From the sequence record NC_041974.1: DNA of 64,000 nt. One strand, 5' to 3'. Positions 3,756 through 42,243 of the stretch are shown in pieces; within the stretch, counting starts at the first letter, position 1; each line of letters opens with the position of its first letter. The position numbers and the translations under genes are program-made. The notes under the pieces were generated by a model. That model did not search any database and had not been told where the DNA came from. It saw only the letters and a list, made by a program, of their open reading frames with translations.

Positions 3756-3983
3756 ATGGCTTGGTCCAAACGCCGTGCAAAGAAACGCATCATTCACTTA
3801 CGTGGTTTTCATTATCGTGTTCAATCACGTAGTATCGCAATCTGGGAACAGTATCGCGAATATCATCAAAATCGACCATTTGGATCTGGCGTTGGTTTAT
3901 TGATGTTACTTGACCCTGAAACTGGTTGTCCAATAGGAGCTCATCGTGGCCTTAAGCAAAACAAAAATAAAGCGTCGTACTAA
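3756..3983 (+). CDS. Small basic hypothetical protein
   Basis: SD GAGG, 75 aa, co-oriented. Confidence 0.55.
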   Translation: MAWSKRRAKKRIIHLRGFHYRVQSRSIAIWEQYREYHQNRPFGSGVGLLMLLDPETGCPIGAHRGLKQNKNKASY

Positions 3984-4230
3984 TGCGCTGTATAACTACA
4001 AAACGCTGGTTGAACGCATTAGCTATAAATGCATGATAGCCCACATCGATGCTCAGGGTATCAAGCTTGAATTGAACCGCACGGGTTCGTCAATTAAAAG
4101 TGAAGACATTCCTGCTGCAAAAGAAGCCCGTCTTGCATTGAAACGCGAAATCGTCCGTCTGCGGAATATCCAGGGGCGTCGTCGTATCGTGAATGCCGGT
4201 AAGATCAAAGCGGCAATCAGCCAGTATTAA
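3946..4230 (+). CDS. Small basic hypothetical protein
   Basis: SD AGGAG before GTG 3946; followed by a terminator. Confidence 0.65.
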   Translation: MALSKTKIKRRTNALYNYKTLVERISYKCMIAHIDAQGIKLELNRTGSSIKSEDIPAAKEARLALKREIVRLRNIQGRRRIVNAGKIKAAISQY

Positions 4231-4233
4231 TAG

Positions 4234-4263
4234 AAGGGACTTCGGTCCCTTTATTTTTTTTTT
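4234..4263 (+). terminator. Intrinsic terminator (AAGGGAC-ttcg-GTCCCTT + T tract)
   Basis: 7-bp stem, UUCG tetraloop, long T run. Confidence 0.9.
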
Positions 4264-6046: not shown

Positions 6047-6096
6047 GAGCTCACCCTAACCGGTGGGCTCTTTTTTTTTGTCTTCTTTTTTTTTTT
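6047..6096 (+). terminator. Intrinsic terminator
   Basis: GAGCTCACC...GGTGGGCTC stem followed by two long T runs. Confidence 0.85.
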
Positions 6097-7155: not shown

Positions 7156-8262
7156 ATGGTACGGATTATTCAGACAGGCGATATTCACCTCTGTCATAAG
7201 CGCACCCCAACGGCGAACATTATCCGTACACTGAACTACATCTTCTATGAAAACGAATCCTTGGCTGAAACCGACCTTATCATCCTTGCCGGGGATGTTT
7301 GGGATACCCTGGTGACCATGCCTAATGACGATGCATTATTAGCTCGTCAATGGATTCGTAAGTTTGTCGAAGATTGCGCATACCACAATGTAATCTTAGA
7401 TGTGTTAGAAGGCACTCCTGATCATGATTGGGAGCAGTCTTCTGAGTTCACCCTCTTTGAAACCAATTGTGAAGTGCGCTACATCAAAACCCTGCAGATT
7501 GTCCGTCACGAGCACTTGGATTTAAATATCCTTTATGTGCCCGATGAATGGCGCCCAACCATCGAAGCGATCTGGGAAGATGTGTGTGTGGCAATGACTG
7601 AAGCTGGACTGGACAAAGTGGATGTCGGGGTGGTGCACGGGGGATTCGATTTTAACTTCCCGCCAGAGTACAACATCAAAGGCCACAGTGCTGAGCGCTT
7701 TAGCAGTATTGTCAAACATGCGGTGTTTGCTAACCACATCCACAAAGCCCAGAGCTTTATGAAAGTGCACGGCCCAGGTTCACCGGATCGATTAGCACAG
7801 GGTGAGGAAGGGGACAAAGGTTACCATCGGGTGGTGATTGATCAGAAGACCGATCAGATGCGTATCCAGTGGATTAAGAACCCACACGCCTGGACCCATA
7901 TCGCAATCAACGTTGCAGATATGTCGGTTGAGGAGATCGTCGCCAAAGCCAAAGCGATCGCAGCACCACTAAGAGCCGGCAGTTATCTGCGTTTTGATAA
8001 CGGTGATCCCTTAGTGGTGAAAGCGGTACTGTGGGCATTGAAAGCAGAAATCCCGCATGTGATATTGGAATACAAAAACAAGAAGCAAGCAGGGATCACG
8101 CAAACGCACCAAACTTATGCCAAGAAGTTTTCTGGCACCCACATTAACCGCAACAATGCCAAAGAGTCGATCGTCGGCTGGTTGCAGGGTAAAGGGTTAA
8201 CGGACGACTCACAGGGTCAGTATTTAAGCGATATCTTACAGCGCGCCATGGCGCTGAAGTAG
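7156..8262 (+). CDS. sbcD: SbcD/Mre11-like metallophosphoesterase nuclease
   Basis: Motifs GDIH, ILAGDVWD, EGTPDHD, VHGG, NHIH, GSPDR. ATG 7156 preferred over TTG 7108. Confidence 0.9.
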   Translation: MVRIIQTGDIHLCHKRTPTANIIRTLNYIFYENESLAETDLIILAGDVWDTLVTMPNDDALLARQWIRKFVEDCAYHNVILDVLEGTPDHDWEQSSEFTLFETNCEVRYIKTLQIVRHEHLDLNILYVPDEWRPTIEAIWEDVCVAMTEAGLDKVDVGVVHGGFDFNFPPEYNIKGHSAERFSSIVKHAVFANHIHKAQSFMKVHGPGSPDRLAQGEEGDKGYHRVVIDQKTDQMRIQWIKNPHAWTHIAINVADMSVEEIVAKAKAIAAPLRAGSYLRFDNGDPLVVKAVLWALKAEIPHVILEYKNKKQAGITQTHQTYAKKFSGTHINRNNAKESIVGWLQGKGLTDDSQGQYLSDILQRAMALK

Positions 8263-29554: not shown

Positions 29555-29610
29555 CGGCATATAGGCCCTCCATTACGGAGGGCCTTTTATGACATCTTTT
29601 TTTTTTGGTT
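29555..29610. terminator. Bidirectional terminator at convergent junction
   Basis: CGGCATAT-AGGCCCTCC...GGAGGGCCT-TTTATGAC plus T run. Confidence 0.8.
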
Positions 29611-29617
29611 TACAGCG

Positions 29618-29995
29618 TTATACCAGGCGCTGAGTTAGCTGCGAACTATATTGAATAGCGTGATAGGTCGCAGGTTTCTCAAGCTGCTCGGTGCAGCGGT
29701 AGACCGGGGTCTTCATAAAAGGACAACCGGCATTCATTAATGCCTCACGGTTGCTGGGCGACTCATCCACGCGAATCACCACATCCGTGGACTGGAAGCC
29801 AAAGACTTCCCGCTTCGTTGCAGTATATTCTGCATCCAGCACCACGATCTTACGGTTGATCACCAGCTTCACGGCCACCGGGTATTTGATTACCAGGTCT
29901 GACCCTAAGCCCGCCAAGACAAACTTAATGACAAACTTCTTAAGTCCATTTAGCAACTGACTCTCACTGGCCCAACTTTTAACAATCTGCAGCAT
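29618..29995 (-). CDS. Hypothetical protein
   Basis: Likely start MLQIV (ATG 29995) with GAGTGGA upstream and a TTATATG motif. Confidence 0.55.
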   Translation of the reverse strand: MLQIVKSWASESQLLNGLKKFVIKFVLAGLGSDLVIKYPVAVKLVINRKIVVLDAEYTATKREVFGFQSTDVVIRVDESPSNREALMNAGCPFMKTPVYRCTEQLEKPATYHAIQYSSQLTQRLV

Positions 29996-30070
29996 GTGTG
30001 TATTTCCACTCATATAAGGGGAAGTTAAGAAAAGCAACCTGAGGGTCCGTCCGTGATCCCTCATAATGTA

Positions 30071-30542
30071 TTACTTCATACCGTCCAACTGCTTTTGAAG
30101 TTCCTTTAACTGACGGCTTGCATCCGGCGTCTCGGCGTCATGGTCTCTGATCGCTTCAATAAACGACTTCCGTTTGCAATAAGGATACTTCATCCATTTA
30201 TCAAATGACAAACCAAATTTGCCCAAGATATCCGCACGCAGATATTCGAGCTCATACTTTCGATACCCAACTAACGCCAGCGAGTCTTCCTGCTCGACCT
30301 GTAAGATTAACGAGAGCGGCGAGGTTTCCACGTTATGGTCAATAATCCCAAACGTGTCATCGTAAAGCTCTGTTAATCGAATTAGTGGATACTCCCAGTT
30401 CTCGGTAAGAAACGTGGGGTTTTCTAACGCGACATCCCAGGCATCGGACCGATCACTTTCGGACAGACCGAAATCCCAATGGATTAGATGTCGGCTTGAT
30501 CGAACGTCTGATTCAGTGTATTCGTCATTAGGGTAAAAAAAA
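30071..30542 (-). CDS. Downstream ORF in the -1 frame of the gp77-type gene (probable frameshift extension; tail-chaperone GT/E'-like)
   Basis: Frame is open through the last 48 nt of the upstream gene; no ATG for about 115 codons after the T8 run; terminator-like hairpin follows at 30040-30062. Confidence 0.65.
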
Positions 30543-32112
30543 CCCGTGCTACGTTCAGCGGGGTGTACGCAGGGAAGGTATTGCTCACCAGCGGCTGACG
30601 CGCCTGGCAGTTCGGGCATTTCCAACGCGGCACCGCAACCACACCGACCGTTACCCGGTTGATGAACTTGTTCAGCTCTTCAAAGAACGGTTTACGCATA
30701 TCCGGGGTTGCACTGAATTGCTTCAGCAGTAATGCCACGTCATCGGCCGACTCAACATAGTTGCCGTCGTTGAACTCGATCTTGGTCACCCAGTGGGCGT
30801 AACCGCGCATGGAGGACAGCGCTGCCTGTTTGTTGATGTGCTGCTCACGCTGCTCACGCGTCATGCTGTCGTTGAAGCTGTCGGTGATCGCTTGTTGAAT
30901 ACCGTTGATCCAGGCATAACCCGCTGCATTCTTATCTTCGAGTGATGGCACCCGCAGATAGAACTTCACATCTTTCACAGTGATGACATTGTCTTTCATC
31001 ACTTCAAAGCCGGTCTGGTAGGCAATGACCTGCTCGACGGTACGGCCGCTGAAGTGAGACATGTGCGCACGCTGGGTTGGTGACAGACGATTGTTGTCAA
31101 TGATCGACAGACGAGAGACGTTAACTTTCGCTGCTTCAACATGCACACACTTCTTCGGATCGGCGGCACAGGCAGTGACCATGTGGTAGCCAGACTTAAA
31201 GCGTGCGCCCAGGTAGGCGTTAGCGATCAGATCAAGATCCTGCTCTTTGATTAACGGCAGCAGGGTTTTCTTATCGGAGACACCGATGCTGCTGTCAGTA
31301 ACCATACCCAGCAGGAAGTCGGTCATGTGCTTACGTACCACGACATCCAGGTTGTTAAACACCAGACCGTTGGTACGACGACCGAGGATCGCTTTCTCAG
31401 CCATGATGGCAGTTTGCATATCCACAAACTCATCATCGCCGGCAATCAGCAACGTAACCCAGATACCGGAATGTGGCAGCGGCAGATGGACATAGTCACC
31501 CATGTTCATTACACCACGTGCCCGCATCACCGCCTGTGGACCGGTCAGTAGTTTAGTGCCTTCGGTACTGCGCTTCACTGGCGGACGAGAGACACCCTGC
31601 ACTTTGTTGTTGTCGAGCAGAACACCCTGCAGCCACTGTGCGCCATCTTGACGAATGGTCAGGTTCAGACCAGAACGGTACGACAGGTTGGTGATGGCGT
31701 TACTGGCCAGGGATAGCCAGATCATCGCTTTATCAGCACCGTACAGACTGACGATCTCTTTTAAGATCTTCTTGTCTTCGGTGTTGGTGTCGATCTCATT
31801 GATCAGCGCCGTCGCTGCATCGTAATCCTGATGCATAATAGACAGCACACCTTCCGTGCCGACATCCTCCATGGAATTCAGCTTTTCAATGATCGGGTTC
31901 TGATAGAGCGGATCGAATGCCTGCTCAACGGCTTCAGCTTCGGGTGCTTCGGCATCGCCCTGCTGACCGGCTTCTGCTGGCTCGAGATCGGTGCCAATAG
32001 TGCCAGTAGCCACCGGGGTAGCAGGACGGCCTGGATCAACTTCAGGGATACCAGAGTGGTTTTCTTCAACAGGCTCTTGCTGTGACAGAATGGATGGGTT
32101 ATCACCGGACAT
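30484..32112 (-). CDS. phiKZ gp77-type core protein; candidate tail/baseplate-hub assembly chaperone
   Basis: 542 aa; acidic disordered N-terminus; C-terminal WKCPNCQ knuckle followed by ARVFF, reminiscent by eye of T4 gp26-type chaperones. Confidence 0.6.
   Translation of the reverse strand: MSGDNPSILSQQEPVEENHSGIPEVDPGRPATPVATGTIGTDLEPAEAGQQGDAEAPEAEAVEQAFDPLYQNPIIEKLNSMEDVGTEGVLSIMHQDYDAATALINEIDTNTEDKKILKEIVSLYGADKAMIWLSLASNAITNLSYRSGLNLTIRQDGAQWLQGVLLDNNKVQGVSRPPVKRSTEGTKLLTGPQAVMRARGVMNMGDYVHLPLPHSGIWVTLLIAGDDEFVDMQTAIMAEKAILGRRTNGLVFNNLDVVVRKHMTDFLLGMVTDSSIGVSDKKTLLPLIKEQDLDLIANAYLGARFKSGYHMVTACAADPKKCVHVEAAKVNVSRLSIIDNNRLSPTQRAHMSHFSGRTVEQVIAYQTGFEVMKDNVITVKDVKFYLRVPSLEDKNAAGYAWINGIQQAITDSFNDSMTREQREQHINKQAALSSMRGYAHWVTKIEFNDGNYVESADDVALLLKQFSATPDMRKPFFEELNKFINRVTVGVVAVPRWKCPNCQARQPLVSNTFPAYTPLNVARVFFTLMTNTLNQTFDQADI
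30535..30542 (-). other. Candidate -1 ribosomal frameshift slippery site (GTT TTT TTT; U UUU UUU)
   Basis: A8 on the + strand. Reads CGG GTT TTT TTT ACC in the gp77 frame and GGT TTT TTT TAC in the downstream frame. Confidence 0.7.
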
Positions 32113-32129
32113 TATGCTTATCCTTACCT

Positions 32130-32597
32130 TTACTTTTTAGTGGGGTCGACCTGAACCGGGTCATTGAGTTTGCTTGCTGCGCCAGCGGCAACCGCGTTAG
32201 CATGGGCGCTGTCTGACATGGTCAGAATGGCAGCACCGTGACGCTGCATCGCATCCAGCAATTTACTTTGCAGGACGATGTATTGTTCGTGCACACTGAG
32301 GAAGTCAGCGATGGTGCTGTCATGCAAGGCATAACCGGTTTTGCCTTGATGCTGCTGCTTGATCATCGGCAGGGTTTCATCGATCTCTTTGACTACAGCC
32401 AGCGCCGCTTCGATGTGCGAGCTTAACGCAGAGGGGTTTGGCTGAAAGCGAATGATGTTGGTGTTGACGGCCATGAGACAAGTATTGCTCAGCTCATTGC
32501 GCAAATTAATCGTATAAGTTGCCGCAGAATCCAGGTACTCCCAGAACTGATCGGGCTGATGGACCTCTGGTGCGAGAGGCGGTTCATTGGTTGACAT
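32130..32597 (-). CDS. Conserved phiKZ-like protein (gp78 type)
   Basis: SD AAGGA; same operon as the gp77-type gene. Confidence 0.65.
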   Translation of the reverse strand: MSTNEPPLAPEVHQPDQFWEYLDSAATYTINLRNELSNTCLMAVNTNIIRFQPNPSALSSHIEAALAVVKEIDETLPMIKQQHQGKTGYALHDSTIADFLSVHEQYIVLQSKLLDAMQRHGAAILTMSDSAHANAVAAGAASKLNDPVQVDPTKK

Positions 32598-41689: not shown

Positions 41690-41739
41690 CAGCATAAGGA
41701 GAGGCCTCGCGCCTCTCCTGTTTATGCCGTCTTTTTTTT
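41690..41739. terminator. Bidirectional terminator with CAGCATAA / TTATGCCG arms
   Basis: AGGAGAGGC-ctcgc-GCCTCTCCT stem, T run. Confidence 0.85.
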
Positions 41740-42243
41740 TTACACTAAAATACCGTTAAAAGCCACCGGGTCATTACCCAGGAACGGGTTGTACCGAACC
41801 ACAGACCCTAATGTGTAATCGTAGTAGATAAAGTCCAAGCATTGCGCACCCTGATAAGTAGTCCATGACTTTGATAGATAGCCATTGCGGTCTAACGCAA
41901 CGTAAGCTGGCCGACTCGATAACGGGGTAAACTTCATCAACACTTGTGGCTGGTTGTTGAGGTTGTTTGTAAATACAGGCAGGGAAGGATGCGCGTGCCT
42001 TGCAATGGAGCACAACCAAGAGTCGTAGGTAAACCACTCTTTATACGACGTGCCGTACATGTTGTTGGATGTGTTCAATGTAGTATTAACATATTTACCG
42101 GCAGTAGCAGACATGCTGGTACTCGCGTTCGCTACCTTCGTATATTTGGCGGCATTGGCCGCAAGCCACGCCTCGAATTGTGCATAGGTCATCTTAGTAC
42201 CTATCTGTGGCTGTGACTTACTGCCCATTAACATCTCTAACAT
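41740..42243 (-). CDS. Putative tail-associated protein, paralog 1
   Basis: Aligns over full length with 42256-42765 (IARHA, RNGY, LDFIYYD, PVxFNGxL). Confidence 0.7.
   Translation of the reverse strand: MLEMLMGSKSQPQIGTKMTYAQFEAWLAANAAKYTKVANASTSMSATAGKYVNTTLNTSNNMYGTSYKEWFTYDSWLCSIARHAHPSLPVFTNNLNNQPQVLMKFTPLSSRPAYVALDRNGYLSKSWTTYQGAQCLDFIYYDYTLGSVVRYNPFLGNDPVAFNGILV

Follow-up and report, generated by a model that had tools for sequence, protein, structure and literature searches.

Erwinia phage vB_EamM_Simmy50 (Agricanvirus) is the source of the DNA analysed here, a window of 64,000 nucleotides (nt) from record NC_041974.1, whose positions 29900-32300 on the minus strand are 100% identical to KU886223 215900-218300. 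On this strand, the gene gp272 encodes a homologue of the phiKZ protein gp77, and the open reading frame (ORF) that follows it is annotated as a gene of its own, gp271. Our comparison of homologous loci indicates that the two are joined by a -1 change of reading frame at a run of T residues close to the gp272 stop codon, as the original prediction, made from the letters of the window, had proposed. A conserved frame change of this kind at the T-run of the gp77 family, whether it occurs on the ribosome or in the transcript, is very likely. We favor programmed -1 ribosomal frameshifting, to which we give a probability of roughly 0.7, and which would yield a short form of 542 amino acids (aa) and a long form of about 680 aa. 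The annotated gp271 would then probably be a recoded C-terminal extension, conserved across Chimalliviridae, and not an independent gene. The following elements of the Simmy50 locus are involved.

30484..32112, minus strand: 0-frame ORF gp272, 542 aa, homologue of phiKZ gp77, Goslar gp081 and RAY gp267; the predicted short product
30535..30542, minus strand: run of eight T (T8; A8 on the plus strand) with the heptamer T TTT TTT at 30541-30535; proposed -1 shift site
30540-30538 and 30537-30535, minus strand: P-site TTT and A-site TTT, the codons Phe525-Phe526 of gp272
30071..30535, minus strand: -1 frame extension of 154 codons plus stop, beginning at the last T of the run; GenBank gp271
30484..30535, minus strand: dual-coding overlap, read in the 0 frame as a 16-codon tail plus stop and in the -1 frame as the variable linker of the extension
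30617..30619, minus strand: ATG, the GenBank start of gp271, inside gp272 and 28 codons upstream of the run; gp271 and gp272 overlap by 136 nt

At the run, the 0 frame of gp272 reads CGG GTT TTT TTT ACC (R-V-F-F-T), which places the heptamer in X XXY YYZ phase with the stop codon 16 codons further on. The -1 ORF is open overall from 30625 to 30071, where it ends with a stop codon at 30071-30073. The ORF, the run and the open frame described in the original prediction were all found again in the sequence, and its arithmetic for the fusion (526 + 154, about 680 aa) is correct. Its remark that the extension lacks an ATG for about 115 codons also holds, as the first ATG is codon 115 and the sole GTG, codon 69, has no clear Shine-Dalgarno (SD) sequence. 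Runs of seven or more T are not rare by themselves. The window contains six, with 22 overlapping matches against 10.2 +/- 4.3 expected, and the one in gp272 is the only one that lies inside a long ORF. The significance of this run therefore comes from comparative data.

By tblastn, homologues of gp272 are found in 221 jumbo-phage records, including PHIKZ077 at E 8e-36, which agrees with the earlier description of the gene as gp77-type. RAY gp267 is the orthologue of Simmy50 gp272, and phiKZ gp077, Goslar gp081 and RAY gp267 together represent the Chimalliviridae core gene cg18, listed as 'hypothetical protein' (Prichard et al. 2023, PMC10299810). We surveyed 99 evaluable homologous loci with 22-100% protein identity, from phages of hosts including Pseudomonas, Erwinia, Salmonella, Vibrio and Ralstonia and from metagenomes. 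The named loci are those of phiKZ, PhiPA3, SPN3US, Goslar, PCH45, RP12, LucasX, pVa-21, BONAISHI and Huxley; metagenomic relatives and 80 IMG/VR loci were compared as well. The original prediction had suggested comparing the homologues at the DNA level, and in this comparison the T-run at the conserved Phe-Phe, its phase and an open -1 frame are present in 99 of 99 loci, with no conserved start for the downstream ORF. The 0-frame stop follows 11-44 codons after the run (median 15). The run is T5 in 6 loci, T6 in 11, T7 in 44, T8 in 34 and T9 in 4, and the heptamer is T TTT TTT in 69, T TTT TTC in 21 and another sequence in 9. These nine exceptional loci, with A CTT TTT, G GTT TTT, G TTT TTT or G TTT TTC, keep the tetramer T_TTT. 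Counted on 61 non-redundant loci, T TTT TTY is used in 56, against an expected share of about 0.11 at x-Phe-Phe sites, since elsewhere in these genes TTT makes up 40% of the Phe codons and T is the last base of 28% of all codons.

The frame that follows the run is equally constant. In every one of the 99 loci, the -1 frame has no stop for 150-192 codons (median 162), compared with a median of 9 for the +1 frame, and in 90 of them its first ATG, GTG or TTG lies at least 20 codons past the run. At one of the 99 loci, that of the RAY and Simmy50 group, the -1 ORF has an ATG before the run, so that the ATG at 30619 is not conserved; in AH06, L006, phiKZ, pVa-21 and BONAISHI, the -1 frame is closed by a stop 2-15 codons upstream of the run end. 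The same arrangement is found in 16 Agricanvirus records that are 97-100% identical, and Salmonella phage SA002, Erwinia phage pEa_SNUABM_37 and Proteus phage 10 (40-49% identity) have T7 or T8 in the same phase. A profile search returned 1706 representative clusters, and the best 150 of these were checked for in-frame fusions. Among these 150, the protein ends where the profile ends, Phe-Phe stands 8-34 residues before the C-terminus in 146, and no in-frame fused form of gp77 and the extension occurs, which argues that both forms are kept.

Two groups of loci deviate in detail. The degenerate sites belong to PhiPA3 (L013 3339-3344), pVa-21 (L019 3109-3113), L048, L055, L077, L079, L081, L082 and L087; all nine have the long -1 ORF with no start close after the run, and those of L079 and L087 also begin well before the run. 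In PCH45 (L016 2239-2245), L094 (Serratia 2050HW-type) and L100, the 0 frame runs 37-44 codons past the run instead of 11-23, which makes the dual-coding overlap two to three times longer.

The extension evolves as coding sequence over the stretch that lacks a start. In AH06, which has 80% DNA identity to Simmy50 and keeps T8, the -1 frame is stopped 15 codons upstream of the run and contains no ATG, GTG or TTG for 100 codons, and the peptide it encodes is 80% identical to that of Simmy50 from the first residue on. Over extension codons 17-85, a part of the start-free stretch that lies past the 0-frame stop, Simmy50 and AH06 differ at 8, 9 and 26 sites of codon positions 1, 2 and 3, and the changed codons comprise 22 synonymous and 11 nonsynonymous changes. 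This is a clear coding signature. In the overlap region, the two phages differ at 3 of 48 nt (16 codons), compared with about 21% divergence downstream. In tblastn, homology of the extension begins at residue 1 in all relatives. More than 70% of 62 lineages share the residues P2, H16, F22, G23, Y58, E83, G108 and P118, among others, and of these H16, F22 and G23 (74-85% of lineages) lie upstream of most possible starts. The extension belongs to PHROGs 13274 and 12109; searches with the single sequence and with a profile gave no Pfam, NCBIfam or Protein Data Bank (PDB) match. Its AlphaFold2 model is all-helical with low confidence (predicted local distance difference test, pLDDT, 48), because the homologue search found only five relatives.

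U UUU UUY is a perfect heptamer for tandem slippage (X XXY YYZ). Heptamers of the form H_HH.U_UU.Y and tetramers of the form U_UU.[U,C] are among the most efficient -1 motifs in Escherichia coli, and U7 is otherwise avoided in genes (Sharma et al. 2014, PMC4066793). According to the mechanism that we propose, most ribosomes would finish the 0 frame at 30484 and release the short form, whose predicted C-terminal helix is completed by its final 18 residues. Some ribosomes, holding tRNA-Phe in both the P and the A site on U UUU UUU (30541-30535), would slip back by one base and read the -1 frame for 154 codons to 30071, giving the long form, in which the terminal helix would be replaced by a linker and the conserved helical domain. 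Tentatively, the protein might be a baseplate or tail-hub assembly factor whose two forms act in a fixed ratio, like lambda gpG and gpGT.

Candidate stimulatory elements differ among the relatives. Downstream of the run, folding z scores below -2 are found in 15 of the 61 loci, compared with 6 in a control window. A conserved hairpin of 8-10 bp is shared by one IMG/VR clade with T TTT TTC. It begins 7-9 nt downstream of the heptamer, the classical spacing of a stimulator; its 3' arm contains the 0-frame stop, and two of its pairs show compensatory changes. This hairpin is a candidate clade-specific frameshift stimulator and is located as follows.

L049 2583-2650, L052 2703-2770, L054 2778-2845, L056 2913-2980, L057 2796-2863 and L064 2532-2599: hairpin after the heptamer in the IMG/VR clade

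The GGGT/ACCC inverted repeat around the Simmy50 run, pointed out in the original prediction, is present and can form a hairpin of 4 bp (-5.1 kcal/mol, z -1.4). It is not conserved in the relatives, being absent from most of them, and was rejected as a stimulator.

Several observations weigh against frameshifting on the ribosome or against its being frequent. In the Simmy50 clade, the 95 nt downstream of the run fold no better than shuffled sequences (z -0.16), and the sole conserved pairing, at a distance of 40 nt, shows hardly any covariation. In the 20 nt that precede the run, 5 of the 61 loci have an SD-like tetramer, which is no enrichment over the background of 0.10 per window. Since no stimulator is found in the Simmy50 clade, the efficiency of the shift may be low there. 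A shallow mass spectrometry survey of crude lysate that lists 44 proteins contains neither RAY gp267 nor RAY gp266. In RP12-type lineages, translational coupling may provide a second route, by which the extension would be made as a free domain. In addition, the conserved Phe-Phe partly dictates the phase in which the run is read, so that phase by itself cannot separate ribosomal from transcriptional slippage. The evidence for a trans-frame product is comparative.

Slippage during transcription, the main rival, would lead to the same long protein. In this case, the RNA polymerase, most probably the non-virion multisubunit enzyme of the phage, would add one U on the A-run template, and part of the mRNAs would have both ORFs in a single frame. 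Because the two routes give an identical protein, comparative data cannot separate them. In 82 of the 99 loci, the run consists of seven to nine uninterrupted T (T7-T9), U7 runs are prone to slippage (PMC4066793; PMC5009743), and the Simmy50 clade has no ribosomal stimulator that we could find, all of which suits a transcriptional origin. However, the run is only T5 or T6 in 17 loci, and the heptamer ends in C in 22 (T TTT TTC in 21, G TTT TTC in 1), a change that shortens the run but leaves X XXY YYZ intact; the hairpin of the IMG/VR clade likewise has the spacing expected of a stimulator that acts on the ribosome. Productive sites of transcriptional slippage usually comprise at least 9 bases, a length that the T8 of Simmy50 does not reach and that T9 attains in only 4 of the 99 loci. 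Taking these points together, we regard slippage of the polymerase as unlikely.

Independent initiation is far less probable. Here, gp271 would be translated from its own start, either the ATG at 30619 or an internal GTG, TTG or ATG, and the T-run would reflect no more than the choice of Phe-Phe codons. GenBank does annotate gp271 separately, the downstream ORFs, as called, have been grouped into phrog_12109 and other families of about 85-180 aa, and RP12 has an ATGA overlap start. Yet outside the Simmy50/RAY group the ATG at 30619 does not occur, and we rejected it as the true start of an independent gene. In 90 of the 99 loci, no start is available for 20-150 codons past the run, and this start-free region is conserved with coding-like substitutions. 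The downstream ORF is in the -1 frame in 99 of 99 loci, and independent genes would spread over three frames. The choice of T TTT TTY is also far above expectation. There is next to no chance that the arrangement is an artefact or a product of decay, that is, a homopolymer sequencing error or a frameshifted pseudogene of a single 680-aa ORF. Although homopolymers are error-prone in some sequencing chemistries, the arrangement recurs in the 16 Agricanvirus records and in about 80 further independent isolates and metagenome assemblies. Decay is hard to reconcile with a 0-frame tail that is itself conserved and predicted to be helical, and with the lack of an intact in-frame version among the best 150 representatives. 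The 99-locus survey effectively excludes both independent initiation and sequencing error. In Ralstonia phage RP12 (L017 3158, ORF254), the T7 heptamer is followed 14 codons later by the ATGA stop/start overlap.

The upstream protein has an AlphaFold2 model with a pLDDT of 71 and a predicted TM score (pTM) of 0.72. A predicted C-terminal helix, residues 521-539, holds Phe-Phe and the whole 0-frame tail. Therefore, the long form would have this helix cut short, with the linker in its place. C315, C322, C499 and C502 are nearly invariant, and F525 and F526 are invariant. The cysteines form a C-x6-C motif (about 31170-31147) and a C-x2-C motif (about 30618-30607) on the minus strand, about 180 residues apart. 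Their conservation suggests a Cys4 metal site that would hold the segment directly before the shift site against the protein core. Residues 1-86 (31855-32112, minus strand) are acidic, rich in Pro, Ala and Glu, and predicted to be disordered (pLDDT <50). This N-terminal region varies in length among close relatives (539 vs 542 aa), and distant homologues align only from about residue 130-190.

The function of gp272 was approached through its sequence and its modeled fold. Single-sequence and profile searches gave no Pfam, NCBIfam or PDB-sequence match, and a profile search with gp272 found no proteins beyond the same 20. Foldseek found nothing in the PDB (best E 0.27), including the solved virion structures searched. 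Foldseek against BFVD, a comparison of model with model in which the names are annotations, returned, besides jumbo-phage homologues, about ten models with names such as 'Baseplate hub assembly protein, bacteriophage T4-like', 'baseplate hub subunit' and 'baseplate hub assembly chaperone'. Their E values are 2e-6 to 5e-2, with target TM scores of 0.5-0.6 and query TM scores of about 0.3; the matches with E 2e-6 to 1e-3 span about 330-350 alignment columns. At the sequence-family level, the only hub match is phrog_150 'baseplate hub', at E 0.26 in 2 of 17 members. Because the sequence gives no support, we treat the assignment of gp272 to baseplate hub assembly factors of the T4 gp51/gp26 kind as a lead that falls short of family membership. 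The original prediction of a gp26/gp51-type protein receives weak support from the predicted fold (BFVD, E 2e-6 to 1e-3) and finds no counterpart at the level of the sequence family. Probably, the gp272 product is not a virion component. The text of the Goslar virion-structure paper, whose model contains 28 proteins, does not mention Goslar gp81 or gp82. The AH06 record names the gp272 homologue 'baseplate protein'. The neighbours of gp272 are a virion RNA polymerase subunit gene and genes for proteins without known function, and synteny with RNA polymerase genes is conserved.

The best-known counterparts of this arrangement are the tail assembly chaperones of long-tailed phages, lambda gpG/gpGT and others including P2 E/E+E', in which ribosomes shift by -1 at a slippery heptamer that lies a few codons short of the upstream gene's stop. 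As in lambda, a minor, C-terminally extended form would accompany a major short form, the second ORF lacks a start of its own, and the arrangement is conserved more than the sequence (PMC5009743). However, gp272 with its 542 aa is about four times larger than these chaperones (roughly 100-150 aa). It matches no chaperone family in Pfam or PHROG, and its 'tail assembly chaperone' matches in BFVD have E around 1, which is noise. It is not located between the tube and tape-measure genes and instead adjoins RNA polymerase subunit genes. The heptamers also differ, U UUU UUY in gp77 and G GGA AAG in lambda, and P2 E/E' uses a T-rich shift site. Since size, genomic position and fold differ from those of lambda G/GT, the relation is one of analogy and not of homology. 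The label 'G/GT-like', used in the original prediction, thus stands for the mechanism only, as the protein has the wrong size and genomic position for a relative and matches none of the families.

T4 assembles its baseplate hub with the help of the chaperones gp26 and gp51; the second of these is required for the hub but does not occur in the particle (PMC3004832). The gp272 model weakly resembles BFVD models annotated with hub-assembly names. That gp272 matches no solved virion structure is consistent with the absence of gp51 from the particle. In contrast, there is no significant sequence match to gp51 or gp26, and gp272 is twice the size. To our knowledge, no recoding occurs in T4 genes 26 or 51. 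The chaperone frameshift has been described as conserved in long-tailed phages 'except T4' (PMC5009743). On a less likely view, the gp77 family would apply the G/GT principle of these phages to a gp51/gp26-like chaperone in jumbo phages. The short form would chaperone the hub or the tape measure, and the rare long form would tether a second partner through its -1 encoded helical domain, which would set the stoichiometry for the very long phiKZ-type tail.

Outside phage tails, E. coli dnaX (tau/gamma) and the sites of insertion sequences (IS) show the same principle, in which the bacterial ribosome shifts by -1 on X XXY YYZ and one gene gives two products in a fixed ratio. Those sites use A AAA AAG with strong stimulators, an SD-like element upstream and a hairpin or pseudoknot downstream, whereas the Simmy50 heptamer consists of U only and the stimulators of the gp77 loci are absent or clade-specific. 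In addition, the shifted product is shorter than the unshifted one in dnaX and would be longer in gp77.

Frameshifting of this kind is a known mechanism; what is new is its place in the gp77 gene family, where it is unreported. The original prediction knew of no such recoding in phiKZ-like phages, and we likewise found no description of it in the literature on frameshifting in phiKZ and jumbo phages, the PRFect paper, the Atkins review (PMC5009743), the Agricanvirus family paper or the core-genome paper. None of the 16 GenBank records examined annotates a joined coding sequence at this site, and the published core-genome table (PMC10299810) has no entry for the extension (RAY gp266, Goslar gp082). 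Where the extension is called, its start differs from record to record. The Agricanvirus records begin it at a non-conserved start, with the 136-nt overlap with the upstream gene, and AH06 has a call of 68 aa (gene 283, L002 7527-7733). In phiKZ, the call of 80 aa (PHIKZ076.4) leaves a 218-nt 'intergenic' gap (L012 3680-3897 for the gap and 3898-4140 for the call, as the two are listed). In SA002, pEa_SNUABM_37 and Proteus phage 10 (L003, L004 and L005), it is called from internal starts.

These findings imply that the gene pair at gp77 is wrongly annotated in more than 200 jumbo-phage genomes, and that the extension, a conserved domain in every relative examined, is missed or truncated by current annotations. 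Should it be confirmed, the frame change would be the first case of conserved recoding to be described in nucleus-forming phages, and it would mean that the bare U UUU UUY motif works on the host ribosomes of many genera. The gp77 loci form a natural series for studying the efficiency of the motif and its tuning, for example by the clade-specific hairpin, and the loci with degenerate sites are useful variants within it. Our analysis also links an uncharacterised core protein, gp77, to baseplate hub assembly as a lead, and predicts that the ratio of the two isoforms matters. If the hub-chaperone reading is true, the extension would be an overlooked universal ('73rd') core domain of Chimalliviridae, and the T4-type tail lineage would use the chaperone frameshift trick at a different protein.

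Downstream of the extension, the original prediction had placed a terminator-like hairpin, and such an element is present.

about 30040..30063, minus strand: hairpin followed by GGUUGCUUUUCUU / U-rich tract, 8 nt past the extension stop

It has a folding energy of -10.8 kcal/mol (z -1.3) and is kept in AH06, where its counterpart (about 7743-7768 of that locus) has a different stem sequence and -11.7 kcal/mol (z -2.0). A simple hairpin scan missed the element because its loop is longer than the 8 nt allowed by the scan. The hairpin is probably a transcription terminator or the 3' end of a unit composed of gp273, gp272 and the extension, although gp270 starts about 45 nt beyond it on the same strand. 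The five other long T-runs of the window, T9-T11 at 4254-4263, 6071-6079, 6086-6096, 29597-29606 and 41732-41741 (plus strand), are covered by open frames of at most 69 codons and are probably U-tracts of terminators or other intergenic signals.

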